64,000 nt of DNA, from the NCBI RefSeq assembly GCF_003918875.1, contig NW_025765392.1, positions 1,116,001-1,180,000 of the forward strand, read 5' to 3'. Source of the stretch: Haliotis rubra. Lineage: Eukaryota. The translations under genes were made by a program, and so were the position numbers. How positions within the stretch are numbered: position 1 is the stretch's first letter; every line of letters begins with the position of its first letter. Below the pieces are notes generated by a model. That model saw only the letters and a program-made list of their open reading frames with translations. It was not told the DNA's origin and did not search any database. Shown piece by piece: positions 14,681-58,147 of this stretch.

Positions 14681-15414
14681 GTAAGTGGCTGTAGTTTTGT
14701 CTTGAGTTTTATTATGATTTGTGTATTTCTCTTAAGGTAGATACAAATAATCGCGTGTTTTAACCGGGAATTAAATATTGATTCTGATGCAGTTAATAGC
14801 TGTTGCAGTAAAGGTAAAGGAGTGACGCTTTTGTAAGATCATGATTATTTAAGGTCTTGACTATGCAAGGTTATGATTGTAAAGCTGTCACATCATTCCT
14901 TTACAGTGACTTGTCTCATCTATGTCATCTTAGGCTATTGTCAAACTCCCCAGGGATTATACATTTAGGGATCCTTTCTATAGTATGCATCGCCATGACT
15001 TCAGGTAAAACTGACAGTCTACCAAACCACGAATACCGCTGGCCGAACCCCTTTTGCCATTGTACTAACAATTATACGACATGGATTCAACTTGTCAGCT
15101 TCATCATTGTGTGACGACTAGCTTTCACAAGCTGGTTTGGGGAATCAGTGTTGAGGGTAACAGGTGACTGTTTTTAGTTAGTAAAAATCTTTAAGCCCAT
15201 CGTGGAACACCCTAGGGTACGGATGCTTAAGATGCACAAGCTTTGAAATTAATAAAACGTAGGTGACATAAACTCTTTAGGATCATACACATGACTAGCC
15301 TTGGGTTTCTCTCATTTTTGTATACGTCCACTACAATCTACATTCCCTTTATTCTTTTCATCAGTATGTCGAGTCCAGAAAGTCGACATTTATATTTATG
15401 TAATGTTTGTGATA

Positions 15415-33516: not shown

Positions 33517-34746
33517 TTATTGTGTTATATGGACGAGGAATCCCACAGACACAACCATCCAAAGAACCGTGAATATAACCATACACAGAGAGTCAGCAGT
33601 TACACAGTACCCAACAGAAATACTCCGACCTTCCAGAACCTTTCCAGTTGGATTCCCACTGCCGGCCGAACCATTGGTTTTGGAATCCAGATGAACCTGG
33701 TCCATGACCCTGCGTCTACTTCCTGGAAATGGTACGGAGCAAAAACGCGGTATCATGAACAATGCCGATTGTGGATTTTTCTTGTTGACCTTCGCAGGAT
33801 CTTTCATGACGATGAAGATGGTGGTGACCACGGACAGAACGCTGATTCCAAGGAGACACGTTAGATACAGGGTGACCATTGGGATGTTGTCGGACGATTT
33901 GGGAAGTAGTTCACTCACGATGCTCATGAATACAGTCAGAGCGAGAAGGCACGTGATGGCATACGAAACCTTCTCGCCACAGTCACACGGAAGTGAGAAG
34001 ACGAATATGTTGAGAAATGAAAGCACCACCACAGGAAGTATTACATTGAGGACAAAGAACATCGGACGCCTTTCAAGATCAATCGCAACGTAAAGGAATG
34101 AGAACCTTGATTCTACAACAAATCTTTCAGTAGTGTATGCTCTGGAAGCTGAAAGAATCCATTCTCCATTTTCTGTGTACTCTTGGGTGTTTGCAGTAAT
34201 CAGTGATGAAACCATTTGCAGCCCGTTTGAATCATAGCTGACGGGTAGAAATCGGAACTGGCATGTCTGAACATCAAATGGAAATAACGTCAGATCTAAC
34301 TTGCAGTCAGTAACAAAGTTTGCCCCAGGTAACCAAGTTACTCTGCCGTCGCTGTAAACTGTAATGGAGGATGTCTCGTCTTTGAAGACATCCCGATCCT
34401 CAACAGACACTGGTACGATGAGTTTCGGTCTCCATATGTCAGTCAGTGGAGGATGTATAGACTTTATGCCGCTATAATCCTCAGGATTCCAGGTGAGAAA
34501 CTCGTCCCGCCATGTTAGATTCATCCACATGTTGCTGTGGAGGATCTGTCTGACCTGGTCTACTTCAGTTATGGCCACCAAGTTGAATCTGCTGTGAACG
34601 TCAACATGTTGACTCTGGTTGTATACTGGTCTGATTTTAGTGCTGTAGTTTCCAAACATGTCGCTATACAGTCTCTTCATCCCCTCAATACTGCCTGCTG
34701 CAGATCTACACAGGGCCAACAGCACCAGCACATACAGGAGCTTCAT
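33517..34746 (-). CDS. nAChR-like Cys-loop ligand-gated ion channel subunit with intronless CDS, copy A (409 aa, non-alpha type)
   Basis: Signal peptide MKLLYVLVLLALCRSAAG, WxD, IWRP, Cys-loop CKLDLTLFPFDVQTC, ENGEW, four TM segments, M1-M2 linker PCDCGEK. ATG at 34746; the track's longer start is a GTG. Confidence 0.95.
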   Translation of the reverse strand: MKLLYVLVLLALCRSAAGSIEGMKRLYSDMFGNYSTKIRPVYNQSQHVDVHSRFNLVAITEVDQVRQILHSNMWMNLTWRDEFLTWNPEDYSGIKSIHPPLTDIWRPKLIVPVSVEDRDVFKDETSSITVYSDGRVTWLPGANFVTDCKLDLTLFPFDVQTCQFRFLPVSYDSNGLQMVSSLITANTQEYTENGEWILSASRAYTTERFVVESRFSFLYVAIDLERRPMFFVLNVILPVVVLSFLNIFVFSLPCDCGEKVSYAITCLLALTVFMSIVSELLPKSSDNIPMVTLYLTCLLGISVLSVVTTIFIVMKDPAKVNKKNPQSALFMIPRFCSVPFPGSRRRVMDQVHLDSKTNGSAGSGNPTGKVLEGRSISVGYCVTADSLCMVIFTVLWMVVSVGFLVHITQ

Positions 34747-34769
34747 CTTCCTGTGTCCCCTTTGAATGT

Positions 34770-34802
34770 AATGAGGCACTGATCCTCACAGTTTTATTAA
34801 AT
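34770..34802 (-). promoter_or_regulatory. Candidate core promoter (TATA-like plus Inr-like) of receptor copy A
   Basis: ATTTAATAAAA about 29 nt upstream of TCATT, 26 nt before the ATG; a similar arrangement is present upstream of the paralogs. Confidence 0.4.
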
Positions 34803-36517
34803 CCTATCTACATTTCAAGTTTGTTAGCTTGCTGGCGTTAGAAAACCACCAGACACGTGAGAATAATTTGTTCAGTCTTGGTGGGTGATTGAACAAACAA
34901 GACAGATAGCCAAACAAATCAATGGCCATTAAACGCTTCGGCTTTTGTCATTCAGCAAGCTATGTTGATAATTAGACGGATATTCCAGCACTAATGGAAC
35001 CTAAGCATCCCTGCACAATGCTTTTTCTCACGACATTGAATTAATGACATTGTTTACACATCGATACTGACGGATATAAAGGCTAGCATTATCCTTACAG
35101 GGATTACCAATACTTGATACGTTCCGAATTTGTAACACTGTGTATGAAATATGTTATAGGGTACAACGTTATGGTTTCGTCAGTTGTCCTCGTGAACAAC
35201 ATCATTTATCAACTGATGTTGCTGTCGTACAAACATCTCAAGTAAGTTGCTAACCAACAAACGTTTCATCTCAAGATTATGTCAATAAATCTTTATATTG
35301 TATATAGATAGTTGATATCCATCGGAGTACAGAAATGGCTGTCCAATTCAGGTCAAGTAAAGTTCTTACTGTTGACCCCAGTTATGGAGCGAATGTTTGT
35401 CTATGTGATGCATAGGTAAGTCTATCTGAATCACTGCAACACAGAGCCAGCAAATCGTACCGTCGGGCACAAGGACTTCATCATACAGATAATACATTGT
35501 ATCCATGCAATCCTCTCATAACCTTTGTATATTCTGAGGATTGCATGGATACAATGACATTGTATTATGCACCCCCAAACTATACTGGTAACTACGAAAA
35601 TTCCACGGCAAAATTGATAATGATGTTACACACATATTTCATTGTGCTTAATTGTGCGCCATAGCAACGTGTATTTTCGTTGAGCTGTCACATTGATTTA
35701 CTGATACTGCAGATCGACGGAAGAAGGTATCTTTATCCAACACTACAGGAGGTTGAGTTTGCCCTCAAGAAGGTTGTCATATAGTTTCAAACCATGAATG
35801 ACTACGTAACCATTTTGTAACGGTAAGCAAAGCATATCACCATAGGCAGTCAAACGTCCTGTGGACGTGATTGACAAACCATGGACAAACCATCACCTTC
35901 CAATACATACACGTGTTTCTCTATTTTGGCATCTCGTATTGTGTTTAAAAAAATGGATGTATTAGTTGTTTACACAGATACGGTGAGAACACGCCCTTTT
36001 TGACACAATTTATATCCACGTTGCATTATTGTCTTAACGTAAAGAGATTTATGATAAGAAACTGTATACTGCCCACAAGAGGAAAATGTGAAAACAGGGA
36101 ATCACTATCAATATAAATATATACTAACGGGAAAGGTAACAGTGCATAAAATGAAAAAGCATCAAATCTATTTGAAAAGTATAAAAATAACTCTACATAA
36201 ACATGCAGCAAGGCCCTTTGCATGAAAGTTGATTTCACGTATGGTGCGTGGCACTTGTACTTTGTGCATGATGTAATTACTCGCTTTTTGCATGCTTTTT
36301 GACGCCTGAAGTTCACACACCTGATATTAAGAAATGAGGAACAGTTTATTGTTCTCTAACCTATGAATGTTGTGGAAAACTTGGTAATTTCAACCTAAAC
36401 TGGGATTCGAACCCACGCCCTCAGAGTCAGGCCCCTAATCGCCAGCACACAAAAGTACTAGAATCTGTGCTTTACTAAGAAAGTGTAATCCCAAATATAA
36501 GATAAGTTACATTTGAC

Positions 36518-37433
36518 ATTTGGATCTGAAATATGGGGTTTTCAGCGTATTGATTGTATTGAGAGAGTGCATCTTTTAGCCTGTAAAAAGTACCTCAATG
36601 TAAGCTCAAAGACACCTAACTGCATGGTATATGGCGAATGTGGCAGATTTCCTTTGTATATCAATTCTCACATAAGATGTTTAAAATATTGGTTTAAGGT
36701 TCTAAATATGCACGAACAACGTCTGCCAAAATTAGCTTACAATATGCTTTTAAATCTGGATAATTTGGGAAAACACACTTGGGTAACCGATATCAGAAAT
36801 TTATTATTTTCTCACGGTTTCGGTTTCGTATGGTTGAGCCAAACAATTGGCGATGTGAACTGGTTTATTAATGAATTTCGTGTTAGATCAATAGATATGT
36901 TCAATCAAGAATGGAAATCCACCCTAGATTCAAGCTCACGATATGAATATTACAGGACCTTTAAAAAGTTACTCCAGCCAGAAAAATACTTATCAATAAT
37001 TACAACATATAGTTTAAGAACAATGTTCGTAAAGTATCGTTTAGGTTTGTTATCTTTAATGATTAATGAGGGTAGAAAAACCTCTGTCCAGAAAGAACGT
37101 CGATATTGTCCTTTATGTAACGTTGGAATAGAAAATGAATTCATTTTACCCTGATATGTCCTTGTTTTCACGAATTAAGACAGAAATATATACCGCACCA
37201 TCTTCTTGCAAAGCAGCCCCATTATGCATATGTATCTTTGTTACAAACCAATAATGAAAATATTCTTGCTCAATTGTCCTCATATATAAAATATGCATTA
37301 GCTAAAAGAGATCTTCTTATAAAGCGAATTGTATACCCTTAAATATATATGTAAATATCCAGAATATTCCTTTATCACTGTAACTCTCATGTATATGGGC
37401 CGGAGGCCTTTCATACAATAAACATCTTTTGAC
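36518..37433 (+). mobile_element. 5'-truncated non-LTR retrotransposon (RTE-X-like ORF2 C-terminus plus 3' UTR)
   Basis: GSEIWG..IERVH..VYGECGRFPL..CPLC motifs, AATAAA, flanking tttgac; the empty site is seen in the paralogous unit near 48330. Confidence 0.85.
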
Positions 37434-38505
37434 TTTGACCACTTTCTATATGGCATAGTCTAATCACCATAAATCATGTTATTATCTCTTTGCATTAAAA
37501 ACATGGCATGGCATCAAATAATGCACAGTTAGTTTATTCCAGTGGTACGTATTGAAACTACGGGTTCACAAATACAGACTTAACCTCAGGAATTAGAAAA
37601 ATGAATCGAACATTTGCCCATGCTTCATTTGGAATGGGCAAGTGTAACACAATTATGGATCTTGATAAATTGCATGGAGCTCATGAATGTCTGAAACTGT
37701 CGTCGTTTTAAGTAGGTGGACTGATTGATGTTTGATCGTTCTGAAAGTTACACGGGTAATGAACCACATCATTCCACGACTCACGACTGGATGTCCCAAC
37801 GTCAGGTGGCTGTGTCACTGTACAGATGTTTACAAAACAATGATGACGTTGCCGAACGGCCACGTGCACGACGTCGGCTCGTCACAACGCCAAGAAAGAT
37901 GAATACGGGTGACACATCTCAGGCCAAGGTTCAAGACTGCAGTGACCACTACTCAGACTACCCCAGAACTTCCACGTATCTGCTGCAAACGAGATAAGCG
38001 CCTATAGTTGAGTCAAAATCATGACTATCAACCTTGGTTGTGGTGGGCGTTGTTTCTACAGAAGTGTCCGTTTTTAACGTTGGCTGTAATGACGCACGTG
38101 GTGTGATCTAGAGTGATCCGATTTTCGGACCACTAACAATTCCGTTTCTTCAACGTTATGGCAACATGATAATGCCCGCTAGAGTTACAATGGTGAATCG
38201 TCAACCGCAAAAAAGTTTTAGTACTGTCTTGTCGTGCAAATCAACTATCTCTCTCCACTCTATAGAGCAGGTGTGCGATGAAATGGCTCCCTCTCTACGT
38301 GCCCAATCCGCCGTTCATGATTTGGCGGCATGAGTCATAGACATGAAAGATGCTGTTCTGCCGTCTTCGAATAATCACAAGATCCACAGATTAAATATTT
38401 CATTATTACATTTTTAAATAGTGAAATAATTCTAACAATCAACAGCTTCGTTTAGTATATGATGATCCAGAATATACTTGAATGATAATTCAATACAGAT
38501 ATATT

Positions 38506-39729
38506 TTATTGTGTTGTCTTGACGAGGAATCCCACAGACACAACCATCCAAAGAACCGTGAATATAACCATACACAGAGAGTCAGCAGTTACACAGTACC
38601 CAACAGAAATACTCTGACCTTCTAGAACCTTTCCAATTCCATTTCCATTGCCAGCCGAACCATCGGTTTTACAATCCAGTTGAACCTGGTCCATGATCCT
38701 GCGTCTACTTCCTGGTAAGGAGCAAAAACGAGGAATCACAAATAATGGTGACTGTGGGATTTTCTTGTTGACCTTCGAAGGATCTTTCATGACGATGAAG
38801 ATGGTGGCGACCACGGACAGAACGCTGATACCGAGGAGACACGTTAGATACAGGGTGACCATTGGGATGTTGTCAGATGATTTAGGAAGTATTTCACTCA
38901 CGATGCTCATGAATACAGTCAGAGAGAGAAGGCACGTGATGGCATACGAAACCTTCTCGCCACAGTCACACGGAAGCAAGAAGACGAATATGTTGAGAAA
39001 TGAAAGCACAACAACAGGTATTATTACATTGAGGACAAAGAACATCGGTCGCCTTTCAAGATCAATGTCAACGTAAAGGAATGAGAATGTGGTATCTTCA
39101 AAGGTTCTTTCAGTAGTGTATGCTCTGGAAGCTGAAACACCCCATTCTCCATTTTCTGTGTACCCTTGGGTGTCTGCGCTGACGCGTGATGAAACCATCT
39201 TCAGCTTATTTGAATCATAGCTGACGGGTAGAAATCGGAACTGGCATGTCTGAACATCAAATGGAAATAAAGTCAGATCTAACTTGCAGTCAGTAACAAA
39301 GTTTGCCCCAGGTAACCAAGTTACTCTGCCGTCGCTGTTAACTGTAATGGAGGATGTCTCGTCTTTGAAGACATCCCGATCCTCAACAGACACTGGTACG
39401 TTGAGTTTCGGTCTCCATATGTCAGTCAGTGGAGGGTGTATAGACTTTATGCCGCTATAATCCTCAGGATTCCAGGTGAGAAACTCGTCCCGCCATGTTA
39501 GATTCATCCACACGTTGCTGTGGAGGATCTGTCTGACCTGGTCTACTTCAGTTATGGCCACCAAGTTGAATCTGCTGTGAACGTCAACATGTTGACTCTG
39601 GTTGTATACTGGTCTGATTTTAGTGCTGTAGTTTCCAAACAGGTCACTGCACAGTTTCTTCATCCCCTCAATACTGCCTGTTGCAGATCTACACAAAGCC
39701 AACAGCACCAACACATACAGGAGCTTCAT
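38506..39729 (-). CDS. nAChR-like Cys-loop channel subunit with intronless CDS, copy B (407 aa)
   Basis: Intact ORF, close paralog of copy A with the same motifs. Confidence 0.95.
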   Translation of the reverse strand: MKLLYVLVLLALCRSATGSIEGMKKLCSDLFGNYSTKIRPVYNQSQHVDVHSRFNLVAITEVDQVRQILHSNVWMNLTWRDEFLTWNPEDYSGIKSIHPPLTDIWRPKLNVPVSVEDRDVFKDETSSITVNSDGRVTWLPGANFVTDCKLDLTLFPFDVQTCQFRFLPVSYDSNKLKMVSSRVSADTQGYTENGEWGVSASRAYTTERTFEDTTFSFLYVDIDLERRPMFFVLNVIIPVVVLSFLNIFVFLLPCDCGEKVSYAITCLLSLTVFMSIVSEILPKSSDNIPMVTLYLTCLLGISVLSVVATIFIVMKDPSKVNKKIPQSPLFVIPRFCSLPGSRRRIMDQVQLDCKTDGSAGNGNGIGKVLEGQSISVGYCVTADSLCMVIFTVLWMVVSVGFLVKTTQ

Positions 39730-41354
39730 CTTCCTGTGTCCCCTTTGAATGTAATGAGGCACTGATCCTCACAGTTTTATTAAATCCTATCTACATTTCC
39801 AGTTTGTTAGCTTGCTGGCGTTAGAAAACCACCAGACACGTGAGAATAATTTGTTCAGTCTTGATGGGTGATTGAACAAACAAGACAGATAGCCAAACAA
39901 ATCAATGGCCATTAAACGCTTCGGCTTTTGTCATTCGGCAAGCTATGTTGATAATTAGACGGATATTCCAGCACTAATGGAACCTAAGTATCCCTGCACA
40001 ATGCTGTTTCTCACGACATTGAATTAATGGCATTGTTTACACATCGATACTGACGGATATAAAGGATAGCATCATCCTTACAGGGATTACCAATACTTGA
40101 TACGTTCCGAATTTGTAACACTGTGTATGCAATATGTTATAGGGTACAACGTTATGGTTTCGTCAGTTGTCCTCGTGAACAACATTATTTCTCAACTGAT
40201 GTTGCTGTTGTACAAACATCTCAAGTGAGTTGCTAACCAACAAACGTTTCATCTCAAGACAGAGTGAGTAATCTGTCAATTTCATTGTATTGTACATAGA
40301 TAGTTTGATATCCAACAGAGTACAGAACTGGTTGTCCAGTTCAGGTCAAGTAAAGTTCTTACTGTTGACCCCAGTTATGGAGCGAATGTTTGTCTATGTG
40401 ATGCACAGGTAAGTCTATCTGCATCACTGCAACACAGAGCCAGCACATCGTACCGTCGGGCACAAGGACTCCATCATACAGATAATACATTGTATCCATG
40501 CAATTCTCTCATACCCTTTGTATCCTCTGAGGATTGCATGGATACAATGACATTGTATTATGCACCCCAAACTATACTGGTAACTACGAAAATTCCACGG
40601 CAAAATTGATAATGATGTTACATACATATTTCATTGTGCTTAATTGTCCGCCATAGCAACGTGTATTTTCGTTGAGCTGTCACATTGATTTACTGATACT
40701 GCAGATCGACGGAAGAAGGTATTTTTATCCAACACTACAGGAGGATGGGTTTGCCCTCAAGGTGGTTGTCATATAGTTTCAAACCATGAATGACTACGAA
40801 ACCACAAGGCAGCGTCAAGGTAACCATTTTGTAATGGTAAGCACAGAATATCACCTGTGGACGTGATTGACAAACCATGGACACCACAAATGGCTCCATA
40901 ATCACATTAACAATCACAAACATTTCAGTTGGCCAATAAATAGCAAAGCACGTACACATGTCTAGGCGTGACCTATTCGATATATTCGTGTGTTCCAGAT
41001 GTTTCACAGCATGTATATTCTTAAGGGTGAACAATGGCATAATACACAATTATGTCGGTAAATGTATCACTCTGGACCCTTAAAAACTGGGATATTTTGT
41101 GGATAAACAACTGGTATTTTGTTAATAGTCTAAAACATATGTGTCTGCCTCTGTGTGTGCGTGTTTGTTTGGGCTATGTATTAACGAGCACCATCAAACA
41201 ATCAAATGGTTGAACCATTGCGATGAAAATATCTACACATGATGAATGATAAGATAAAGGTTTACGTTTCAGCCTCAAACACAACACAAAGTGTTCAGTC
41301 ACTGCAAATGTTGCTTAGATCCACTTGTGATTTTTGCTAATTGCCAAATGTTGT

Positions 41355-41433
41355 TGCAGTCTCTTCATCCCCTCATTACTGCTGCTGCAGATCTCCACAG
41401 GGCCAACAGCACAAGAACATACAGGAGCTTCAT
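41355..41433 (-). pseudogene. 5' fragment (signal-peptide region) of a further receptor copy, with upstream flank to about 41660
   Basis: Reads MKLLYVLVLLALWRSAA, then frameshifts and truncates; upstream sequence is homologous to that of the other copies. Confidence 0.85.
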
Positions 41434-42477
41434 CTTCCTTCGTCGCCTTGATAGTAATACGGCACTAATGAGCAGCTATTTATTAAATACGATCTACAGT
41501 TTCCGTTGGAGAATCGTCACACATGTGAGAACAATTTGTTCAGTCTTGGCGGACAAACAAGACAAACAGACAAACTATTAAATGGCCGTCGAGCTTTAAT
41601 GCATCCATTAAACGATTTGGCTTTTGTCATTCAGCAAGCTATGTTGACAATTGGACCGGTATTTGTTATTGCTTGTCAAGGGGCACTTACTGCCACAAGG
41701 TTACACTCATCAATTCCAAGAGATGAACTAAGTCAATATCTTTTCTTGTCTCTTAATATGCAAATGAGGTCTAGATGATGGACATTTATTTCCTTTGAAC
41801 TGAAGGAGATCAGTTAACATTAATATATCCACCTTTCACCATTTAGAACAATACAAACGTGTGATTATCTAGTTAACAATTACAAATGAAGCAAACTCAG
41901 TCTGGTATGGGTTGAACAATATCTTTTTGGCTGCCTGAGGGTTTATCATCACCTTCCAATACATACACGTGTTTCTCTATTTTGGCATCTCGTATTGTGT
42001 TTAAAACAACGGATGTATTTGTTGTTTACACAGACATGGTGAGAAGACGCCCTTTTTGACACAATTTACATCCATGTTGCATTATTGTCTTAACGTAAAG
42101 AGATTTATGATTAGAAACTGTATACTGCCCACAAAAGGCAAATGTGAAAACAGGGAATCAGTATAGATAAAAACATATACTAACGGGAAAGGTAACAGTG
42201 CATAAAATGAAAAAGCATCAAATCTATTTGAAAAGTATAAAGCCTCAGGACCGGCCGACCAAGCGGGACGTCACATCAACAACCAAGACAACCATATTCG
42301 GCTGACCCATCTCAAGAATCGATTCCAGATTGTCAGTTTGGGATGCAGCACATCTCATGGTCGGACACAACTTGTCATTGTCAATGGCAATCATTGGTCC
42401 CCATGTGTGTGGCGAAAAGATTCAGATTCTATACTGAAAGCCATTGAAAACGCAATTTTCACACTAATTTCAACATA

Positions 42478-42880
42478 TATATAAACCTAACTGGCAAGAT
42501 ATGTTTGCGGAACATCTGTGAATGAACGTCTGTGAATAATTTCCCATCTGAAAATGTCAAGGTCAACAACAACATCAGTGACGCAACAACGACATAAAAC
42601 AAAGGAGGGGTCAATTTGCAAAGTCAATATCGTGTGTCAACCGTGCGCTGCAAGACATGCTCGCAGTCTTTGGGGCATTGAAAGACACACACATTTCTGG
42701 GAACAGCTGTTGATGGTCTGCAGCCTCCTGATGGTCTGTGGTCTGATCATGACACCACCCAAAACGATCATGTTCAAAGACACAGTTTGGCGCAAGTCTT
42801 TCTCCTTTACGTCGATAAATCTGTTGACGTCCATCTGCAAAGGGATAAGTTAAACCTGGATTCATCTACGTTCAGGCCGT
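42478..42880 (-). mobile_element. Tc1 transposase fragment
   Basis: DESRFNL and RRKGERLAPNCVFEHDRFG motifs on the minus strand. Confidence 0.65.
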
Positions 42881-43214
42881 CCGGCATACGACCCATCCTG
42901 ACGCAACATTGTCGAGAAAATTGCCTAAAGTTATTGCCAAAATCATGACGTTCGTGGCTTGTATAACATAGGCTAAGACCTTCCACAAGGACATTCCGCA
43001 CTGCCATCTCCGTATGATCTTAATATCCACTGATCAAAGTGTGCATGGTAACCTTTTCATTGCTGTTATTCTTTTAAATCGAGAAAGAATTTTAAGAAAG
43101 AACAGCCTCGTTTAGTAGTATATATGGTAATCCATCAGGATATTTCTGAATGATTATTAAGTACAACAATTTAAGACTTTACCATACCTGGCAGAAAGTT
43201 ATGAGAAGGTTGTT

Positions 43215-44452
43215 TTACTGTGTTATCTGGACGAGGAATCCCACAGACACAACCATCCAAAGAACCGTGAATATAACCACAGAGAGTCAGCAGTTACAAT
43301 AGCACTCACAGAAATACTTTGACCTTCTAGGAACCTTAATCCAATTCCATTTCCATTGCCAGCTTCAAACCAATGGTTTTAGAATCCAGTTGAACCTGGC
43401 CCATGATCCTGCCCACTTCCTGGAAATGGTAAGGGAGCAAAAACGAGGAATCACAAAATAATGGTGACTGTGGGATTTTCTTGTTGACCTCGCAGGATCT
43501 TTCATGACGATGAGGATGGTGGCGACCACGGACAGAACGCTGATACCGAGGAGACATATGTGATACAGGGTGACAATTGGGATGTTGTCGGATGATTTAG
43601 GAAGTAGTTCACCTAATGATGCTCATGAATACAGTCAGAGCGAGAAGGCACGTGATGGCATACGAAACCTTCTCGCCACAGTCACACGGAAGAAGAAGAC
43701 GAATATGTTGAGAAATGAAAGCACAACAACAGGTATTATTACGTGAGGACAAAGCACATCGGTCGCCTTTCAAGGTCAATGTCAACGTAAAGGATAGAGA
43801 AGAAGGTGGAATCTACGAAGGTTCTTTCAGTAGTGTATGCTCTGGAAGCTGGAAAGAATCCATTCTCCATTTTCTGTGTACTCTTGCGTGTTTGCGCTGA
43901 TGAATGATGAAACCATCTTCAGCTTATTTGAATCATGGCTCGACAGGTAGAAATCGGAACTGGCATGTCCGAACATCAAATGGAAATAAAGTCAGATCTA
44001 ATTTGCAGTCAGTAACAAAGGCTTGCCCCAGGAAACCAAATTACTATACCGTCGCTGTTAACTGTAATAGAGGATGTCTCTCGTCTTTGAAGACATCCCG
44101 ATCCTCAACAGACACTGGTACGTTGAGTTTCGGTCTCCATATGTCAGTCAGTGGAGGGTTTATAGACTTTATGCCGCTATAATCCTCAGGATTCCAGGTG
44201 AGAAACTCGTCCCGCCATGTTAGATTCATCCACACGTTGCTGTGGAGGATCTGTCTGACCTGGTCTATTTCAGTTATGGCCACCAAGTTGAATCTGCTGT
44301 GAACGTCAACATGTTGACTCTGGTTGTATACTGGTCTGATCTTAGAGCTGTAGTTTCCAAACAGGTCGCTGTACAGTCTCTTCATCGCCTCAATACTGCC
44401 TGCTGCAGATCTACATTGCGGCCAACAGCACCAGCACATACAGGAGCTTCAT
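43215..44452 (-). pseudogene. Full-length receptor copy C with many small frameshifting indels (pseudogene or poorly polished sequence)
   Basis: Collinear with the paralogs from ATG (44452) to TAA (43215); track ORFs 44044-44439 and 43336-43557 are fragments of it. Confidence 0.85.
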
Positions 44453-44844
44453 CGTCCTGGTTCCCTTTGAAGACGTAATGGGGAAATGATACGCATATTT
44501 GTATTAAATACTATCTACATTGCCAGTAGCTTGCTGGCGTTGGAGAACCACCACCAAATGAAAACAATTTGTTCAGTCTTAGTGGATGACTGAACAAACA
44601 AGTCAGATGGCCAAAGTAATCAATGGCCATTAAACGCTTTGACTTTTGTCATTCAGCAAGCTATGGTGACAAATAGACCGATATTTCAGCACTAATGGAA
44701 CCTAATGTTCCATGCACAATGCTTTGTCTCACGAAACTTAGTAAACGGCATTGTTTACACATCGATACCACCAATACTTAACGCGTTTCAAATTTGTAAC
44801 ACTGTGTATGCAATAAGGTATTGGGTACAAAGTTATAGTTTCGT

Positions 44845-45147
44845 AGACCGCCGGTGTAGTGGTTAAGAGCGTCCGCCCGCAGAGTGGAAGGTCGCGGGTT
44901 CCCTGCCTGGCGCTCGGCATTAATGGGTACAACAAGGACTGTTCGAATCGGAGTCAGTATAATGTGTCTGAGTGGGGTATTCATGCTTCACTGCGTCATG
45001 GTATCTCAGTGGGCTAGCACTATAAAACCAGCTTAAGTCTGGGCTAGTACAAGCAGCCGCGCATACATACACGCATGCACGTCGTCATATGAGCGAAATA
45101 TTCTCAAGCACGACGTAAAACCCAATTTCACCTCACCTGACCTCACC
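44845..45147 (+). mobile_element. tRNA-derived SINE family C (V-domain-like)
   Basis: tRNA-like head, ccctgcctggcgctcggcatt..gtcagtataatgtg core, (CACCT)n tail, TSD tatagtttcgt; the empty site is visible in paralogous flanks near 35170 and 40155. Confidence 0.88.
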
Positions 45148-45676
45148 TATAGTTTCGTCAATCGTCTACGTGAACAGCATTACTTCTTCATTGATGTTGC
45201 ACAAGCGTCATAAGTGCGTTGCTAACCAGCAAACATTTCATGTCGAGACAGAGTGAGTGATCTGCCAATAAATCATTGTATCGTATAGACATAGGCTTAA
45301 TATCGATCATATCATACTTTGACGTTGGAGTACAGAACCGGCTGTCCAATCCCGGTCCAGTACCGTACTTACTGTTGGCCAGACAGCAGGTCCCAGTTAT
45401 GGAGCGAATGTTGTTTTATCTGATGCACAGGCGTGTCTATCTGTATCACTGCAACTCTGAGCCTGGCAATTCATACAGTCGGGCACAAAGACTCCATCAT
45501 ACAGATAAGACATTGTGTCCATGCAATCCTCCTTACTCGCTTCTCACAATCGTGTGGTAGTGGTCACTTTCCACCCCAAAACTGATGGGTTTGCCCTCAA
45601 GGTGGTAATCATTTAGTTTCAAGCCATGAATGACTACGAAAACACAAGGCCCAGCGTCAAGGTAACCATTTGTAAC

Positions 45677-45753
45677 ATTCGTCCTGCCATGTTAAGTTCA
45701 TCAACACGTCGCTGTCACCTGGTCTACTTCAGTTGTGGCCGCCAAGTTCAATC
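45677..45753 (-). pseudogene. Short internally deleted receptor fragment (LNLAATTEVDQV / SDVLMNLTWQDE)
   Basis: Reverse complement matches the FNLVAITEVDQV and SNVLMNLTWRDE coding segments of the paralogs. Confidence 0.7.
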
Positions 45754-45811
45754 CAACTCTACTTTAGGAGTTTGCCCTCACGGTGGTAGTGATTCAGTTT
45801 CAATGTAGTTA

Positions 45812-46476
45812 TGCAGTATGTGTATGTTTACGTATACGTGTATATGTGTACGTGTCCGTGTATGTGTATGTGTGTACGTGTATATGTGTATGTGTACGTG
45901 TATGTGTACGTGTACGTGTATATGTGTACGTGCTTATTTACATGTATGTGTACGTATACGTGTATGTGTATATACGTGTATATGTGTATGTGTATACGTG
46001 TATGTGTATGTGTATGTGTATGTGCGATGTGTATGTGTACGTGTATATGTGCATGTGTATGTGTGTATGTGTGCGTTTACATGTATGTGCACGTATATGT
46101 GTATGTGTGTATGTGTATATAATACGTGTATGTGTATGTGTATATGTGTATATGTGTATTATGTATGTGCATGTGTACGTGTACGTGTATGTATGTACGT
46201 GTACGTGTATATGTGCATGTGTATGTGTATGTGTACGTGTACGTATATGTGTATGTGTACGTGTATATGTGTACCTGTACGTGTATATGTGTACGTGATT
46301 ATGTGTATGGATGTGTACGTGTACGTGTATATGTGTACGTGTTGTACGTGATATATGTGTACGTGTATGTATGTATACGTGTACGTGTATATGTGTACGT
46401 GTGTATATGTGTAGGTGTATATGTGTACGTCTACGTGTATGTACATTTATGTGTTAGTGTATGTGTATGTGTGTGT
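45812..46476. repeat. Compound purine-pyrimidine microsatellite (TGTA/TACG/TGTG)
   Basis: About 660 bp of nearly uninterrupted RY alternation. Confidence 0.97.
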
Positions 46477-47935
46477 TTTGGTTAACAATATGTTTCTCTT
46501 CACTGTTCTTGAAAACAAACTCTTTACTCAAGCATTGAACCCAGAAGGCTATTTATCAACTAAAGCACCATCAAACAATGAAGTGGTTGATCCTTTGCGG
46601 TGAAGAAAACACCAATAAGCAGTAATACAATACAAAGTTTTCAGTCGTTAGAAATGATCGTTAGAGTCACTTGTGAGTTTTTCGCATGCGTCAAAACAGA
46701 ATCTGGTATCACGTATCGTTTTGTCATCATAATATAAAAATCCTTTTGAACTGAACCCTAAAATAACACTTTGATGATTTTTTAAACCAGTACATTTCAG
46801 AAAATGCCAGTTTTAGCGTATACGACATGCAGTAAATGATAAACTGAAGCATTTGAAGTGTATAATGAATTTCTAAACGTTATCAATTATTGCTTGACTG
46901 CCGCAAGTTACACTCATCAAATCCAAGAGATGAACTAAGTCAATATCTTTTGTTTTCTCTTAATATGCAGATAAGGTCCAGGGTGATGGACATTTATTTT
47001 CTTTGAACTGAAGGAAATCAGTTATTATTGATATTCACCTTTCACCTTTTAGAACAATACAAACGTGAAATTGTCTAGTTTCCATAACAACTGAAGCAAA
47101 CTTAGCCTGGTATGGATTGAACAATGTGCTTTGGGCTGCCAGAGGGTTTGTCATTACCTTCCAATACATACACGTATTTCTCTAGTTTGGCATCTCGTAT
47201 TGTGTTAAAAACCGGATGTATTAGTTGTTTACCCAGATACAGTGAGAACACGCACTTTTTACACAATTTATATCTACTTTCCATTATTGTCTTAATACAA
47301 AGAGATTTATGAATAAAAACTTTTATACTGCCTACGATAGTGTAAATGTGCAAATAGAGTATCACTATATATATAACTATATACTCTAACGGGAAAAAGA
47401 AACAGTGCATAATATCAAATTGCATAACAGCTATTTGAAAGTACAAAAATAACCCTAAATAAACATGCAGCAAGGCATTTTCATGTCACGTATTGTGCGT
47501 GGCACGTGTACTTTAAAAATTGAAGAACAGTTGATTCTTCTCTAGCCTCTGAATGTTGTGGAAAACATGTTAATTTCAACCTAAACTACGCTTACGGACT
47601 CTGCGTCTTTGCGCCGTGGGTATGCTGGGAATGGACTGACCCAAAATGAAGTGGCCAGACATTTTAGTGTCCAACGAAACACGACGTCATCTCTATGTAT
47701 ACGCTTTTCTTCATATTGGGAATACGAGAGAGATTTGCCTCGGACCGGCCGTCCAAGCGGGACGTCACATCAACAACCAAGACAACCATATTCGGCTGAC
47801 CCATCTCAAGAATCGATTCCAGATTGTCAGTTTGGGGATGCAGCACATCTCATGGTCGGACACAACTTGTCATTGTCAATGGAAATCATTGGTCCTCATG
47901 TGCAGCCGAAAAGATTCAGATTCTATTTCTTTTTT

Positions 47936-48320
47936 GGGGTTGAGTCCCATCCGAGTCCCAACCCACGCCCTCAGAGTCAAGCACCTGATCGCCAGCACAC
48001 ACTGTACTGGAATCTTTACTTTACTTTACTAAGTGTACTAATCCCAAATATAACATATGTTATATAAGACAACTTTCTAAATGGCATTGTGTAATCGTAG
48101 CATAGAGAGGTACACAAAGTCCGCAGTCAAGAATACTTGTTGTTCGACTTAAATTTTTGTGGAAGTCGCGGTGGCTGAGCATGTTAGGCGGCTGACTGTG
48201 TGTGATGGCGATTATTTGCCTGACTCTGAAGGTGTGGGTTAGATTCACGGATGGGACTCAACTCAACAAAAGTACTAGAATATGTACTTTACTAAGAAAG
48301 TGTAGTCCCAAATATAACAC
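47936..48320. repeat. Two oppositely oriented tRNA-like repeat segments, each followed on the + strand by an AT-rich motif; partial copy at 36400-36500
   Basis: 47936-48003 is the reverse complement of part of 48164-48262; the gtact.gaat..tactttactaag..cccaaatataa motif occurs three times. Confidence 0.6.
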
Positions 48321-49122
48321 AAGTTACATTTGACCATTTTCTATATGGCATTGTTTAATCACCACAGATCATGTTATTATCTCTTTGCAATAAAAACATG
48401 GCATTGCATCAAATAACGCACAGTTAGTTTATTCCAGTAGTATATATTGAAACTACGGGTTCACAAATACAGATGTAACCTCAGTAATTAGAGAAATGAA
48501 TCAAACATTTGTCCATGCTTCATTTGCGTGGAGCTCATGAATGTCTAAAACTGCCGTCGTTTTAAGTAGGTGGACTGATTCATGTTTGATCGTTCTGATA
48601 GTTACACAGGTAATGAACCACATCATTCCACGACTCACGACAGGATGTCCCAACGTCAGGTGGCTGTGTCACTGTACAAACAATACAATAATCACGTTGC
48701 CTTGCGGCCACTCACACCATCCCAGAACTTCGACGTATCTACCGCAACACAGCCAGGAACGACCTACGTCAATAGGGGTTACGACCAGGTCGTCCGGCAT
48801 ACGACCTATCCTGACGCAAAATCGTCGAGAAAATTGCCTTAAGTTGTGCCAAAATCATCACGCTCGTGGATTGCATAACATCGGCTAAGACCTTCCACAA
48901 GGGACATGCTGCTCTGCCATCTCCGTATGATCTTAATATCCACTGATCAAAGTGTGCATGGTAACCTTTCATTGCTGTTATTCTTTCAAATCGAGAATGA
49001 ATTTTAACAATGATCAGCCTCGTTTAGTATATATGGTAATCCATTAGGATATTTCTGAATGATTATTAAGTACAACAATTTAAGACTTTACCATACTGGC
49101 AGAAAGTCATGAGAAGGTTGTT

Positions 49123-50352
49123 TTACTGTGTTATCTGGACGAAGAATCCTAAAGACACAGCCATCCAAAGAACCGTGAATATAACCATACACAGAGAGTC
49201 AGCAGTTACACAGTACCCACCAGAACTACTCCGACCTTCCAGAAGCTTTCCAGTTGGATTCCCACTGCCGGCCAAACCATTGGTTTTAGAATCCAGTTGA
49301 ACCTGGTCCATGATCCTGCGTCTACTTCCTGGAAATGGTAAGGAGCAAAACAGAGGAATCACAAATAATGGTGACTGTGGGGTTTTCTTGTTGGCCTTCG
49401 CAGGATCTTTCATGACGATGAGGATGGTGGCGACCACGGACAGAACGCTGATACCGAGGAGACACGTTAGATACAATGTGACCATTGGGATGTTGTCGGA
49501 CGATTTTGGAAGTAGCCCACTCACGATGCTCATGAATACAGTCAGAGCGAGAAGGCACGTGATGGCATACGAAACTTTCTCGCCACAGTCACACGGAAGT
49601 GAGAAGACGAATATGTTGAGAAATGAAAGCACAACAACAGGTATTATTACATTGAGGACAAAAAACATCGGTCGCCTTTCAAGATCAATGTCAACGTAAA
49701 AGAAAGAGAAGGTTGAATCTACGAAGGTTCTTTCAGTAGTGTATGCTCTGGAAGCTGAAAGAATCCATTCTCCATTTTCTGTGTACGCTTGGGTGCCTGC
49801 GCTGATGAGTGTTGAAACCATCTTCAGCTCATTTGAAAAATAGCTGACGGGTAGAAATCGGAACTGGCATGTCTGATCATCAAATGGAAATAATGTCAGA
49901 TCGAGCTTGCAGTCAGTTGCAAAGTTTGCTCCAGGTAACCAAGTTACTCTGCCTTCGCTGTTAACTGTAATGGCGGATGTCTCGTCTTTGAAGACATCCC
50001 GATCCTCAAGAGACACTGGTACGATGAGTTTCGGTCTCCATATGTCAGTCAGTGGAGGGTGTATAAACTTTATGCCATTATAGTCCTCAGGTTTCCAGGT
50101 TAGAAACTCGTCCCGCCATGTTAGATTCATCAACACGTAGCTATGTAAGATCTGTCTGACCTGGTCTACTTCAGTTATGGCCACCAAGTTAAATCGGCTG
50201 TGAACGTCAACATGTTGACTCTGGTTGTATACTGGTCTCATTTTAGTGCTGTAGTTTCCAAACATGTCGCTGTATAGCCTCTTAATCGCCTCAATACTGC
50301 CTGCTGCAGATCTACACATAGCCAACAGCACCAGCACATACAGGAGCTTCAT
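49123..50352 (-). CDS. nAChR-like Cys-loop channel subunit with intronless CDS, copy D (409 aa)
   Basis: Intact ORF with signal peptide, Cys-loop CKLDLTLFPFDDQTC, GEK and 4 TM segments. Confidence 0.95.
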   Translation of the reverse strand: MKLLYVLVLLAMCRSAAGSIEAIKRLYSDMFGNYSTKMRPVYNQSQHVDVHSRFNLVAITEVDQVRQILHSYVLMNLTWRDEFLTWKPEDYNGIKFIHPPLTDIWRPKLIVPVSLEDRDVFKDETSAITVNSEGRVTWLPGANFATDCKLDLTLFPFDDQTCQFRFLPVSYFSNELKMVSTLISAGTQAYTENGEWILSASRAYTTERTFVDSTFSFFYVDIDLERRPMFFVLNVIIPVVVLSFLNIFVFSLPCDCGEKVSYAITCLLALTVFMSIVSGLLPKSSDNIPMVTLYLTCLLGISVLSVVATILIVMKDPAKANKKTPQSPLFVIPLFCSLPFPGSRRRIMDQVQLDSKTNGLAGSGNPTGKLLEGRSSSGGYCVTADSLCMVIFTVLWMAVSLGFFVQITQ

Positions 50353-52116
50353 CTTCCTTCGTCCCCTTTGAATGCAATGAGGTGCTGATCCCCAGCTGTT
50401 TATTGAAAACTATCTACATTACGAATGAGACCAATTTGTTTGGTCCTGGTATATGATTGGACAAACAGGACAGAAAGCCAAACTGTTCAATAGCCATCGA
50501 GCTTCCACATGTCCATCAAACGCTTTCGCCTTTGTCGCTCAGTTATGTTGACATTTAAGCCAATATTCAATGGAACCGCATCGTGCACGCACAATCCTTT
50601 TTTGCACGAAATTGAATTAATGTATTCTCTTAAAACACATAATTTCTTAATTGTTGTTGCTGTTGTAAACTGTCCTAAGGGACTGGGAAACGAACAAACA
50701 GTTCAAGACAGAGGGATTGCTCTGTCAATCAACCATTGTATTGTATTTGCATAGTTAGTATCGATCACGTTATACTCCGATTGATTGAGTAGTGAACCGG
50801 CTGTCCAATTCCGGTCAAATAGCAAACTTACTGTTAGCCAGAAAGTAGGCCTCATTTATGTAGTGAATGTAGTTTTACGTGATGCACAGGCGTTTCTATC
50901 TGTATCACTGCGATTCCGTGCCTGGCAATCCTACTTCACAGCTCGAAGACTCCATCATGCAGACAATACTCTGTAGCCATGAGATCCTCTTACATCCGCG
51001 TGATACTTGTCACTTACTACCCTACACCTACATTGTAAAATGATAAGATATTACATAACATTTTGTTATATTTGATTTTGTGCCATAACAACAATACTTT
51101 CGTTGCTCTATCACATTGATTTACTGACACTGCAGATCAACAACAAGAGCTATTTTTTACCCAACTCTACAAGAGGATGAGTTGGCCCTCAAGGCAGGCG
51201 CAAGTTTCAAAACAGAATCTGGCATCACATACGGTTTGTCATCACAATAAAACACCATTGAAAACTGTACCCTAAAATAACTGGATCCTTTTTATGTATA
51301 ACAGTACATTTCAGGAAATGCCACTTTTAGAGTATACGACATGGAGCAAATGATAAACTGAAGCATTTGAAGTGTCTAATGAACTAAGTCAGTATGTTTT
51401 TCTTTTCTCTTAATATGCAGATAAGGTCTAGATGATGGGCATTTATTTCCTTTTAACTGAAGGAATCAGTTATTATTAACATTCACCTTTCACCTTTTAG
51501 AACAATACAAACATGAGATGGTCTAGTTTCCGTAACAACTGAAGAACCCTCAGCCTGGTATGGGTTGAACGATGTGTTTTTGGCTGCCAGAGGGTTTGTC
51601 ATCACCTTCCAATACATACACATGTTTCTCTAGTTTGGCATCTCGTACTATGTGCAGAAACAGGATGAATTAGTTGTTTACACAGATATGGTAAGAAGAT
51701 GTCCTTCATGACAGAATTACATCCACATCGCAGTATAGCCATAGTGCAAAGATATTTTTGAATAAAATCTTCATACTGCCCACAATAGGTAAATGTGCAA
51801 ACAGGGAATCACTATATTTAAGTATATACTCTAACGGGAAAAAGTAACAGTGCATAATATCAAATTATATAAAAGCTATTTGAAAAGTATAAAGATATCC
51901 CTAAATAAAAATGCAGCAAGGCAGTTTGCATGAAATTTGATGTCACATATCGTGGGTGGCACGTGTACTTTGTGCACAACGAACTTACTCACATCTTGCA
52001 TGCTTTTGACTCCTGAAGTTCACACACCTGATATTGCAAATTGAATTCAAATTGGTTGATAATTTTCTAGCCTCTGAATGTTGAGGAAAACTTCAACCTA
52101 TACTGCGCGTACTGTC

Positions 52117-52743
52117 ATGCCTCGGCTTACAGAAAGTCAGCGTCTCCGCGCCGTGGGTATGTTGGAGAATGGTCTGGTCCAAAATGAAGTGGCCAGACAT
52201 TTTAGTATTCAACAAAACACGACATCATCTCTGAGATATTGTCAGTATAATGGGAACACGACAGATTTGCCTCGGACCGGCCATCCACGCGGGACGTCAC
52301 ATCAGCAAGACAACCACATTCGACTGACCCATCTAAAGAATCGATTCCAGACTGTCAGTTTGGGAATGCAGCACATCTCATGGTCGGACACAACTTGTCA
52401 TTGTCAATGGCAATCTGCGATACAGGGATGTACTCATTGGGCCTCATGTACAGCCGTTCATTCAAAGACAGAGACGTAACTTCACGCTTCAACAAAACAA
52501 AATTCCCGAACACATGTCGCTCGTGTTTTGACTGAACGTTTGGTACTTTCATGGAGCCGTCTCCTAACGAGCATGCTTGAGATGAAATGGAGCGAGGTTT
52601 ACGTCAAGCCTAGAAATGACGTCAGCTGAATTGGGACACGTGTTGGTTCAAACATAGAATATCATTTCCCAAGGTGAGTGTGGGTTATGCATCGTCATTG
52701 TCAAGGCTGCATCAACGCCAATCGTGGACACACACGATGTTGA
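52117..52743 (+). mobile_element. Second Tc1 transposase relic (paralogs near 47590-47900 and 42245-42400)
   Basis: MPRLTESQRLRAVGMLENG..EVARHF..PRTGHPR..QDNHIR and terminal GHTRC*. Confidence 0.8.
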
Positions 52744-53169
52744 ATTTGTGACTTGACTTCTGACACCACATCTCTTCAAAGGCGTTTTACGATGTCTAGA
52801 GTCAAATCATGCAGATTTCGATATTATCTTGTCAAAAGTTAAACACTGGTTAAGGAAAACACTACAAATGATGTAATTATCTTTTTGCATTAAAAATGAC
52901 ATGAAATCCAATAATGCAAAATTACTTTATTCCAGTAGTATATATTGAAACTGTGTTCCCAAACACAGATGTAGCCACAGTAATTAGTATAAAGTATCAA
53001 ACATTTGCACGTGTTACATTTGGAATGGGCAAGTCTAAACACGTTTGTGAAAAGCATCTCGATAAATTGCGTGGAGCTCATAAATGTCTAAAACTGCCGT
53101 CGTTCTACGAAGGTAACTTGATTCATGTTTGATCATTCTAAAATTACACAGGTAATGAACCACATCATT

Positions 53170-53940
53170 CCACGACTCACGACTGGATGTGCCAACGTCA
53201 GGTGGCTGTGTCACTGTACAGACGTTTTCAAAACAATAATGACGTTGCCGGTCGCCCACGTGCAGGACGTCCACACGTCACAACGCCAAGAAAGAACAAT
53301 ACGGGTGTCCCATCTCCGGCCAAGGTTCCAGACTGCAGTGACCACTACTCAGACCATCCTAGGACTTCGGCGGAACGCAGCCAGGAACCACTTACGTCAT
53401 TACGGGTTACGACCACGTCGTCCCGTACTTACAGCCTGTCCTGACGCAACGTCATTGAGAAAATTGCCAAGTTAAGCCAAAATCATGACTGTCAACCTCG
53501 GTTGTGGTGGACGTTGTTTCTACAGAAGTGTCCGTATTTATCATTTCCCATAATGACGAATGCCAACGTGTTTCCAGACGTGGTGTGGACTATATAGATT
53601 GATCCGATTTTCGAACCACTATTCTATTTTGTCAACGTTACGACAAACCTTTTGAGATTTCGACCGGATAATGCTTGTCCTGACAGGCCTAGTGTTACTT
53701 TTGCTTTTCCTGAACCGCACAATATTTACGTAATGTCTTTGCCTGCAAATGTTCCGGATCTCATCCCTATAGAGAATGTGAGGGATGAAATGTAGCTATG
53801 TTTACACCATACCAAATCCGCAAGATAACGTTCGTGGATCGCATATAATATGGTAAGCCCTTTCTCAGGCTTCCGTGACCATTTGATAGACACTATGCGC
53901 CGTCGATGTACGACTGCACTGTATGTTGGACATACCCCAA
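53170..53940 (+). mobile_element. Most complete copy of the co-duplicated Tc1 relic
   Basis: QRQVAVSLYRRFQ..GRPRAGRP, then PDLIPIENVRDE-like and GHT-like remnants. Confidence 0.75.
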
Positions 53941-54227
53941 ATTTGTGAGATTGTTGTTTGATCCCTGCCCCGCATTAGGACGTATTTCATGGACATGAAA
54001 CATGCTGTTCTGCCATCTTTGTATAATGTTAATATCCGTTGATCAAAGTGTGCATTGTAACTTTTCATTGCTGTTATGTTTCCAAATCTAGAAAGAATAT
54101 AAAAAATGAATAGCTTTGTTTAGTATATGATGATCCATCAGGATATTCTTGAACTGTTACTTAAGTACAACTGTTACAGGTAGTTTAAGGCTTTACTATA
54201 TTGGCACAAAGTCATGAGAAAATTCCT

Positions 54228-55439
54228 TTATTGTGCTATCTGGATGAGGAATCCCACAGAAACAACCATCCAGAGAATTGTGAATATAACCATACACAGA
54301 GAGGCAGCAGTTTGACTTTGACCTTCTAGAACCTTTCCAGTTGGATTCCCATTGCCAGCCGAACCATCGGTTTTAGAATCCAGTTGAACCTGGTCCATGA
54401 TCCTGCGTCTACTTCCTGGAAATCGAAAGGAGCAAAAACGAGGAATTACAAACAATGGCGATTGCGGGATTTTCTTGTTGGCCTTCGCAGGATCTTTCAT
54501 GACGATGAGGATGGTGGCGACCACGGACAGAACGCTGATACCGAGGAGACACGTTAGATACAGGGTGACAATTGGGATGTTGTCGGATGATTTTGGAAGT
54601 AGGTCACTGACGACACTCATGAATACAGTCAGAGCGAGAAGGCACGTGATGGCATACGAAACTTTCTCGCCACAGTCACGCGGAAGTGAGAAGACGAATA
54701 CGTTGAGAAATGAAAGCACAACAACAGGTATTATTACATTGAGGACAAAGAACATCGGTCGCCTTTCAAGGTCAATGTCAACGTAAAGGAAAGAGTAAGT
54801 GGAATCTACGAAGGTTCTTTCAGTAATGTATGCTCTGGAAGCTGAAATACTCCGTTCTCCGTTTTCTGTGTACGCTTGGGTGTTGGCACTAACCAGCGAT
54901 GAAACCATCTTCGGCTCATTTGAATCATAGCTGACAGGTAGAAGCTGGTACTAGCATGTCTGAACATCAAATGGAAATAAAGTCAGATCTAACTTGCAGT
55001 CAGTTGCAAAGTTTGCCCCAGGAAACCAAGTTACTCTGCTGTCGCTGTAAACTGTAACAGAGGCTGTCTCGTCTTTGAAGACATCCCGATCCTCAACAGG
55101 CACTGGTACGATGAGTTTCGGTCTCCAAATGTCAGTCAGTGGAGGGTGCATAAACTTTATGCCGCTATAATCCTCAGGTTTCCAGGTGAGAAACTCGTCC
55201 CGCCATGTTATATTCATCAACACGTTGCTATGGAGAATCTGTCTGATCTGGTCTACTTCAGTTATGGCCACCAAGTTGAATCTGCTGTGAACGTCAACAT
55301 GCTGACTCTGGTTGTATACTGGTCTGATTTTAGTGTTGTAGTTTCCAAACAGGTCGCTGTACAGTCTCTTCATCGCCTCAATACTGCCTGCTGCAGATCT
55401 ACACAGGGCCAACAGCATCAGCACATGCAGGAGCTTCAA
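54228..55439 (-). pseudogene. Receptor copy E with one in-frame TAG (54951-54953) directly after the Cys-loop
   Basis: Track ORFs 54951-55439 and 54228-54908 are in the same frame; CAG(Q) is changed to TAG. Also ENGEW>ENGER, PCDC>PRDC and a short deletion before M4. Confidence 0.9.
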
Positions 55440-56319: not shown

Positions 56320-56569
56320 NNNNNNNNNNNNNNNNNNNNNNNNNNNNNNNNNNNNNNNNNNNNNNNNNNNNNNNNNNNNNNNNNNNNNNNNNNNNNNNNN
56401 NNNNNNNNNNNNNNNNNNNNNNNNNNNNNNNNNNNNNNNNNNNNNNNNNNNNNNNNNNNNNNNNNNNNNNNNNNNNNNNNNNNNNNNNNNNNNNNNNNNN
56501 NNNNNNNNNNNNNNNNNNNNNNNNNNNNNNNNNNNNNNNNNNNNNNNNNNNNNNNNNNNNNNNNNNNNN
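56320..56569. other. Assembly gap (250 N)
   Basis: Run of N. Confidence 1.
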
Positions 56570-58145: not shown

Positions 58146-58147
58146 GG

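Follow-up and report, generated by a model that had tools for sequence, protein, structure and literature searches.

The analyzed window, a stretch of 64,000 nucleotides (nt) from the blacklip abalone Haliotis rubra (C502:1116001-1180000; coordinates without a contig name are positions in this window), contains a tandem array of genes encoding proteins similar to nicotinic acetylcholine receptor (nAChR) subunits. Five head-to-tail units of about 5 kb, each carrying one gene copy, follow one another on the minus strand between 33.5 and 55.4 kb. The copies were located with the list of open reading frames (ORFs) and by tblastn and blastn searches of copy 3 against the window. These three sources agreed with an earlier note made from the sequence alone, which had counted at least seven same-strand copies or fragments, three of them intact, in 33517-55439, and had supposed a gastropod host. 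The uninterrupted, compact coding regions of about 405-409 codons described there correspond to single ORFs of 407-409 amino acids (aa) running from a signal peptide to the fourth transmembrane helix (TM4).

The window contains five full-length copies. Three of them have intact frames, which encode 409, 407, and 409 aa from the first ATG, and two are broken. The intact copies occupy the long minus-strand frames 33517-34779, 38506-39762, and 49123-50352, and each consists of a single exon. Copy 1 (33517..34746, minus strand; 409 aa), detected in the ORF list and by Pfam, is 88% identical to copy 3, keeps the Trp of binding loop D and has Glu at position 20' of the second transmembrane helix (M2). 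Copy 2 (38506..39729, minus strand; 407 aa), supported by the ORF list, tblastn, and Pfam, shows a 6-nt in-frame deletion in the intracellular loop. In copy 3 (49123..50352, minus strand; 409 aa, P0001), which was characterized from the ORF list, Pfam, and an AlphaFold2 (AF2) model, the loop D Trp is replaced by Leu and position 20' of M2 is Gly.

The two broken copies are also full-length. Copy 4 (43218..44421, minus strand), defined by tblastn and DNA alignment, is 91.6% identical to copy 3 at the DNA level and differs from it by about 19 insertions or deletions (indels) of 1-4 nt; its tblastn match is split between frames and seven stops were counted in the genome search. This copy could be a pseudogene, or its lesions could partly be assembly indel errors. 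Copy 5 (54228..55439, minus strand) was identified as a pseudogene from the ORF list, tblastn, and alignment. Its ATG is changed to TTG, a TAG is present at codon 163, 18 nt are deleted in frame before TM4, and the invariant Trp196 is replaced by Arg; in the ORF list, one stop divides it into 54228-54908 and 54951-55439. The annotation of H. rubra includes a protein, P0013 (406 aa), with the same private substitutions as copy 5 and without a Cys-loop region; apparently its gene model passes over the in-frame stop of this copy. The start of the Cys-loop is likewise missing from P0012 (394 aa), a model derived from RefSeq.

Two short fragments lie inside 33517-55439 and a third one outside, at 28.4 kb, all on the minus strand. 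The fragment at 41358..41652 comprises the upstream flank and the first 25 codons or so (71% blastn identity to 50276-50556), while 45679..45753 corresponds to roughly codons 53-82 (77% blastn identity to 50108-50195). The outer fragment, 28445..28571, covers roughly codons 89-130, with 55% identity over 42 aa by tblastn and 77% by blastn.

When a 6 kb unit was used in blastn, a repeat period of 4.7-5.9 kb was obtained, and the flanks and several spacer segments recurred with each gene. Because the units recur at this distance with conserved flanks and spacer segments, the array is a tandem duplication at the DNA level, far beyond chance. A conserved 5' flank (50353..50622, minus strand), 85-91% identical between units, accompanies every unit and is a putative promoter; it includes an AT-rich, TATA-like element about 45-50 nt upstream of the ATG. 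The units of the window are the start of a 110 kb cluster (C502:1149520-1258927), entirely on the minus strand, with 12 loci, seven intact and about five broken.

Domains, Pore, and Binding Loops of the Encoded Proteins

In all three intact copies, Pfam detected the domains Neur_chan_LBD (E 1e-42 to 1e-47) and Neur_chan_memb (E 1e-15 to 1e-20), and the best PDB sequence matches of copy 3 were human alpha3 and alpha7 (E ~1e-54). The AF2 model of copy 3, with a predicted local distance difference test (pLDDT) score of 82.8, is composed of a beta-sandwich, three transmembrane helices (TM1-3), a disordered loop of about 57 residues (322-378), and TM4. Comparison of this model with the muscle and alpha7 nAChR structures by VIA alignment gave a Z of about 30. 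The signal peptide, the Cys-x13-Cys loop with FPFD, and the four transmembrane helices are retained in the intact copies of the window. In all of them, M2 starts with GEK, with Glu at -1', and has Leu at 9', as in channels of the cation type; at 20', the ring residue differs between copies, being either Glu or Gly. An anion channel was rejected, since M2 starts with GEK and no PAR-type motif is present. Judging by these features, the proteins are complete Cys-loop subunits of the nAChR-like cationic branch.

The acetylcholine-binding loops have been extensively altered. The WxPD...Y motif of loop A is lost, with Pro instead of Tyr93; Trp149 of loop B is replaced by Val, and its loss extends to all copies; and loop C lacks the Cys-Cys pair and has Phe at both Tyr188 and Tyr195. 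None of the features that define an alpha subunit (the Cys-Cys pair and the Tyr of loop C, the Tyr of loop A, and the Trp of loop B) was found in the family, and the proteins are of the non-alpha type. Copies 1 and 2, like most members of the family, retain the Trp of loop D; in its place, copies 3 and 5 have Leu, and several intact paralogues Leu or Met.

In one orthologous pair from other abalones, P0017 of H. cracherodii and P0016 of H. rufescens, the second cysteine of the Cys-loop is Phe (FPFDVQTF). The ORF of this natural 'Cys-loop-less' member is intact in the two species.

Selection on the Intact Copies

The ratio of nonsynonymous to synonymous substitutions (dN/dS) was calculated pairwise by the Nei-Gojobori method, which has low power, for whole regions and single loops of the seven intact H. 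rubra copies. The pairwise values were between 0.27 and 0.50 (mean 0.34), at a dS of 0.13-0.27. Regional dN/dS values were 0.10 for TM1-3, 0.19 for M2, 0.32 for the ectodomain, and 0.46 for the intracellular loop; they stayed below 0.5 everywhere but in the short TM4 tail, where the value of 0.95 was reached at very low dS and was treated as noise or gene conversion. The intact copies are thus under purifying selection as channel-forming proteins and not in neutral decay.

Among 15 Haliotis proteins, loops F and C varied more than the remainder of the ectodomain (entropy 0.85 vs. 0.46; one-sided Mann-Whitney p=0.002). Loops D, A, E, and B show conservation among the members of the family. Pooled pairwise comparison of the seven paralogues, again at low power, did not reveal a raised dN/dS in the pocket loops: loop F had 0.30, loop C 0.34, and the two together 0.32, the same as the remaining ectodomain (0.32). 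Despite their variability, loops F and C equal the remaining ectodomain in dN/dS because dS is also higher in them.

At the ends of the gene, dS between paralogues was 0.105 (signal-peptide codons) and 0.090 (TM4 tail), around half of the 0.2-0.3 found mid-gene. Gene conversion at the ends of the units or mRNA constraint may account for these low values.

Phylogeny and Loss of Introns

Intact orthologues and paralogues were found in four Haliotis species. The close relatives are 82-84% identical in H. asinina and 65-71% in H. cracherodii and H. rufescens. When the Haliotis family was placed in a tree alongside vertebrate subunits, relatives from gastropods, and further H. rubra clusters, its members grouped in one clade with 100% support. 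This clade lies within a gastropod clade supported at 96%, together with proteins of Babylonia, Aplysia, Biomphalaria, Bulinus, and Elysia, and the other abalone clusters fall outside it. All of the nearest relatives are gastropod proteins; the one from Babylonia is 38-45% identical, depending on the alignment.

A second tree, restricted to 24 Haliotis members, showed nearly species-specific groups for H. rubra and H. asinina, while H. cracherodii and H. rufescens have three lineages in common, of which one has expanded recently. The trees therefore agree with the earlier view of a lineage-specific family. Its nesting among conserved beta-type orthologues, which had been named as a check on that view, was not found, and a conserved beta-type orthologue was rejected on the grounds of the Haliotis-only clade and its species-specific expansions. 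According to these trees, the family evolves by birth and death and not as a conserved orthologue.

The genes of H. asinina are single-exon, with gene calls equal in length to the coding sequence, and are placed in tandem 8.4 kb apart. Outside the abalones, the Babylonia relative has seven coding exons over 23 kb, and the Biomphalaria and one Aplysia relative have at least six; another Aplysia relative is single-exon. The introns of Babylonia, Biomphalaria, and Aplysia coincide near residues 82, 125, 165, 263, and 322 of copy 3. Since these positions are common to both sister subclades, they point to an ancestor rich in introns, all of which the abalone lineage has lost. The gene structures support such a loss and subsequent tandem duplication in this lineage.

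Repertoire of Nicotinic-Like Loci in the Genome

The genome-wide copy count proposed in the earlier note gave at least about 90 further stop-free, single-frame nAChR-like loci in H. rubra, of roughly 350-540 aa, distributed in many clusters on other contigs (e.g., C669:1417501-1440862, C2160:11024-131780, and C2046:547562-663833). This number is a lower bound, as the search gave 103 matches at E < 1e-10 and, of 601 first-look candidates, scored 102. The further loci are 27-40% identical to the query, and all 18 of those sampled are complete single ORFs of 350-433 aa. The hallmarks of alpha subunits are missing from every sampled H. rubra cluster, as well as from the gastropod relatives.

The array had been presented as something special. 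Because at least about 90 other loci in the same genome share its features, which have also been published for molluscs (PMC6896357), it is not, and the C502 array is an ordinary example of a published phenomenon. In RefSeq, the genes of the family are named 'neuronal acetylcholine receptor subunit alpha-3-like'. Since the proteins are devoid of every alpha-subunit hallmark, the 'alpha' label is misleading and they are better treated as orphan channels.

Sequences Around and Between the Units

A non-LTR (long terminal repeat) retrotransposon directly adjoins the array at 57421-63991 on the minus strand, with long frames for an endonuclease (62459-63037), a reverse transcriptase (59462-61096), and an RNase H (58821-59402), all on that strand. 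Just upstream of the unit of copy 5 lies a run of 250 N (56320-56569), either an assembly gap or masked sequence. The longest spacer, between copies 4 and 3, contains a long, imperfect TG/CA-rich microsatellite (45783-46351), which translates as Val-Tyr/Cys-Val repeats in several frames. On the plus strand, a degraded transposase of the Tc1/mariner type (HTH_Tnp_Tc3_2 and DDE_3), split between two frames, was found at 24870-25678, and 11587-14694 is an ORF for an acidic protein of 1035 aa, rich in Ser, Thr, and Asp, with internal tandem repeats of about 40 aa.

Discussion

The explanation that we prefer, with a probability of about 0.6, is a 110 kb cluster, so far known only from Haliotis, of single-exon genes for non-cholinergic, nicotinic-like channel subunits, of which the first five units lie in the window. 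An intron-rich ancestral gene, still multi-exon in other gastropods, has an intronless counterpart in abalone, and this form has multiplied through unequal crossing-over of the units of about 5 kb, with birth and death of copies and parallel expansions in other abalones. The subunits keep the features needed for folding, assembly, and cation conduction, having lost the principal-face acetylcholine site. They may form homo- or heteropentameric cation channels, and the residues of the pocket suggest that these are probably gated by something other than acetylcholine, a ligand that would act at a more hydrophobic pocket between subunits. The genes are best regarded as an orphan, Haliotis-specific family of non-alpha subunits of cation channels, which arose by a route already known from molluscs, intron loss and tandem duplication.

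Several observations weigh against this reading. Loop C retains two aromatic residues, Phe in place of Tyr188 and of Tyr195, and most copies have the Trp of loop D; because both are kept, the proteins may contribute to an acetylcholine site as complementary subunits. Since two full-length copies out of the five in the window are defunct, the family may be partly decaying. As regards the origin of the genes, neither an A-run of 8 or more nor a positionally conserved AATAAA/ATTAAA was found within 1.5 kb downstream of any copy, and no target-site duplication remains. With neither a remnant of a poly(A) tract nor a conserved poly(A) signal left, the absence of introns is the one sign of retroposition. 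Of the proposal that the genes were retroposed and then tandemly amplified, intron loss and amplification are upheld by the multi-exon relatives with shared introns, but the hallmarks of retroposition were not found.

Evidence of expression was also sought. None of the runs in which the search of sequencing data found the gene is recorded as RNA, a result that does not show that the genes are silent. Two runs do hold it (X1 and X2), and they are genomic, because coding and spacer DNA are covered alike and repeats reach a huge depth; their contigs are short. A third run (X3) touches repeats only. Moreover, the protein clusters contained no full-length member derived from a transcript, and nothing specific on expression of these genes in abalone tentacles or chemosensory tissue was found in the literature.

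The closest precedent is the work of Jiao et al. (2019, BMC Genomics; PMC6896357), who described intronless tandem nAChR expansions in molluscs and proposed retroposition followed by tandem duplication. The abalone genes agree with these expansions in being single-exon, arranged in tandem on the same strand, and lineage-specific, in leaving pseudogenes as by-products, and in having the Pfam ligand-binding and transmembrane domains. That study stressed bivalves and ascribed fewer copies to gastropods, in contrast to the at least about 90 intact single-frame loci of this gastropod. The multi-exon relatives with shared intron positions also go beyond it, as they directly support intron loss in the abalone clade.

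The chemotactile receptors (CRs) of cephalopods, represented by octopus CRT1 and squid CRB1 (van Giesen 2020; Allard 2023; Kang 2023; PDB 9e6b, 8eiz), are likewise nAChR-derived, intronless, and arranged in tandem. As in the abalone proteins, their canonical acetylcholine site is lost, with hydrophobic replacements in the pocket, and the cation channel architecture is kept. The earlier note had leaned on this likeness, but CRs are no nearer to the family than vertebrate nAChRs are. Structure-based identity was 26% to CRT1 and 22% to CRB1 (Z 23.3 and 22.9), compared with 31% to human alpha7 (Z 30.3), and neither CR ranked within the top 60 PDB sequence matches or the top 50 from Foldseek. This comparison by structure-based identity and ranked matches argues against membership in the cephalopod CR clade. 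Because the family shares the CR feature set without close kinship, a function in common with CRs would have to be convergent.

Among lophotrochozoans, orphan nAChR-like receptors that lack the Cys-Cys tip have been described as well (PMC10338036). One of them, Alpo4 of the annelid Alvinella pompejana (PDB 8bx5), resembles the abalone proteins in being nAChR-like, in lacking that tip of loop C, and in belonging to an expanded orphan set. It differs in coming from another phylum and in its distance (24% identity, Z 26.3), and there is no evidence for sterol-like ligands in the abalone family. Vertebrate alpha3 and alpha7 gave the best matches in both sequence and structure, with 31-33% identity to alpha7, and have in common with the family the Cys-loop, FPFD, and a GEK-type M2; structure-based identity to beta2 was 29%. 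Unlike alpha3 and alpha7, the abalone subunits have no YxCC, Pro for the loop A Tyr, Val for the loop B Trp, an intracellular loop of about 65 aa, and a single exon.

Sensory, immune or stress, and developmental roles have all been proposed for molluscan expansions of this kind. A chemical-sensing role is plausible. In its specific form, which follows the suggestion of the earlier note, with the subunits acting in tentacle, epipodium, or larval sensory cells as peripheral ionotropic contact chemoreceptors for food or settlement cues, convergent with the CRs, it is possible but unlikely. The variability of loops F and C, the most variable parts of the ectodomain, fits this idea, but these two loops are variable across Cys-loop receptors generally. 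Between-species turnover in copy number, typical of environment-facing receptors, also fits; the same features are found, however, in all those other loci of the genome, and nothing singles out this array. The set of features shared with CRs (intronless tandem genes, lost acetylcholine site, and retained cation pore; PMC11526382) speaks for chemoreception, but with the identities given above it would be a convergent likeness, and pocket sites of octopus CRs were reported to be under diversifying selection (PMC11526382), whereas no excess of dN/dS was seen in the pocket loops of abalone. That divergent nAChR clades of gastropods serve ionotropic chemosensation has been raised as a hypothesis in a 2026 preprint, which recognizes a 'CR-like' clade in these animals (PMC13174522). 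Bivalve genes of this kind, on the other hand, respond to immune and stress challenges and are expressed in early development (PMC6896357).

It is rather improbable that the proteins are non-alpha subunits, beta-like or structural, which assemble together with canonical alpha subunits and so tune the acetylcholine-gated receptors of neurons or muscle. The absence of the loop C Cys-Cys pair, as in beta subunits, would suit such partners, but vertebrate beta subunits keep the loop B Trp that is lost in all copies here. A complementary face could be provided by the loop D Trp of copies 1 and 2 and most other members, together with the conservation of loops D, A, E, and B, yet several intact paralogues have exchanged this Trp for Leu or Met. 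The Glu/Gly variation in the 20' ring could tune conductance. The fast turnover in copy number and the lack of one-to-one orthology among gastropods are unusual for a core synaptic subunit, and a single genome contains more than 90 non-alpha genes of this sort. That the copies are transcriptionally silent or decaying retrocopies without a present function is very improbable. The broken copies (two of five full-length ones in the window and about five of the 12 loci in the cluster), the missing RNA evidence, and the finding that unexpressed genes are commoner among intron-poor nAChRs (Jiao et al., PMC6896357) would be expected of such retrocopies, but seven full open frames have been maintained with the low dN/dS reported above, strongest in TM1-3, intact orthologues and paralogues persist in four abalone species, and the upstream flank is conserved between units.

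Orphan, single-exon, probably non-cholinergic channel subunits remain our preferred explanation of the array. With about a hundred such genes, the abalone genome reaches the scale described for bivalves, and this revises the view that gastropods have few. We also put forward, as a speculation that we consider improbable, that ionotropic chemoreceptors, for instance for food cues from algae or biofilms and for settlement cues, arose in abalone by independent recruitment of an intronless nAChR-derived family, in convergence with cephalopod CRs. If this were true, the orphan nAChR-like clusters of gastropods would include a large unrecognized chemosensory repertoire, in animals whose settlement and feeding cues are of commercial and ecological importance. 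Should any cluster prove to be sensory, it would be a second, independent molluscan case of neurotransmitter receptors turned chemoreceptors.

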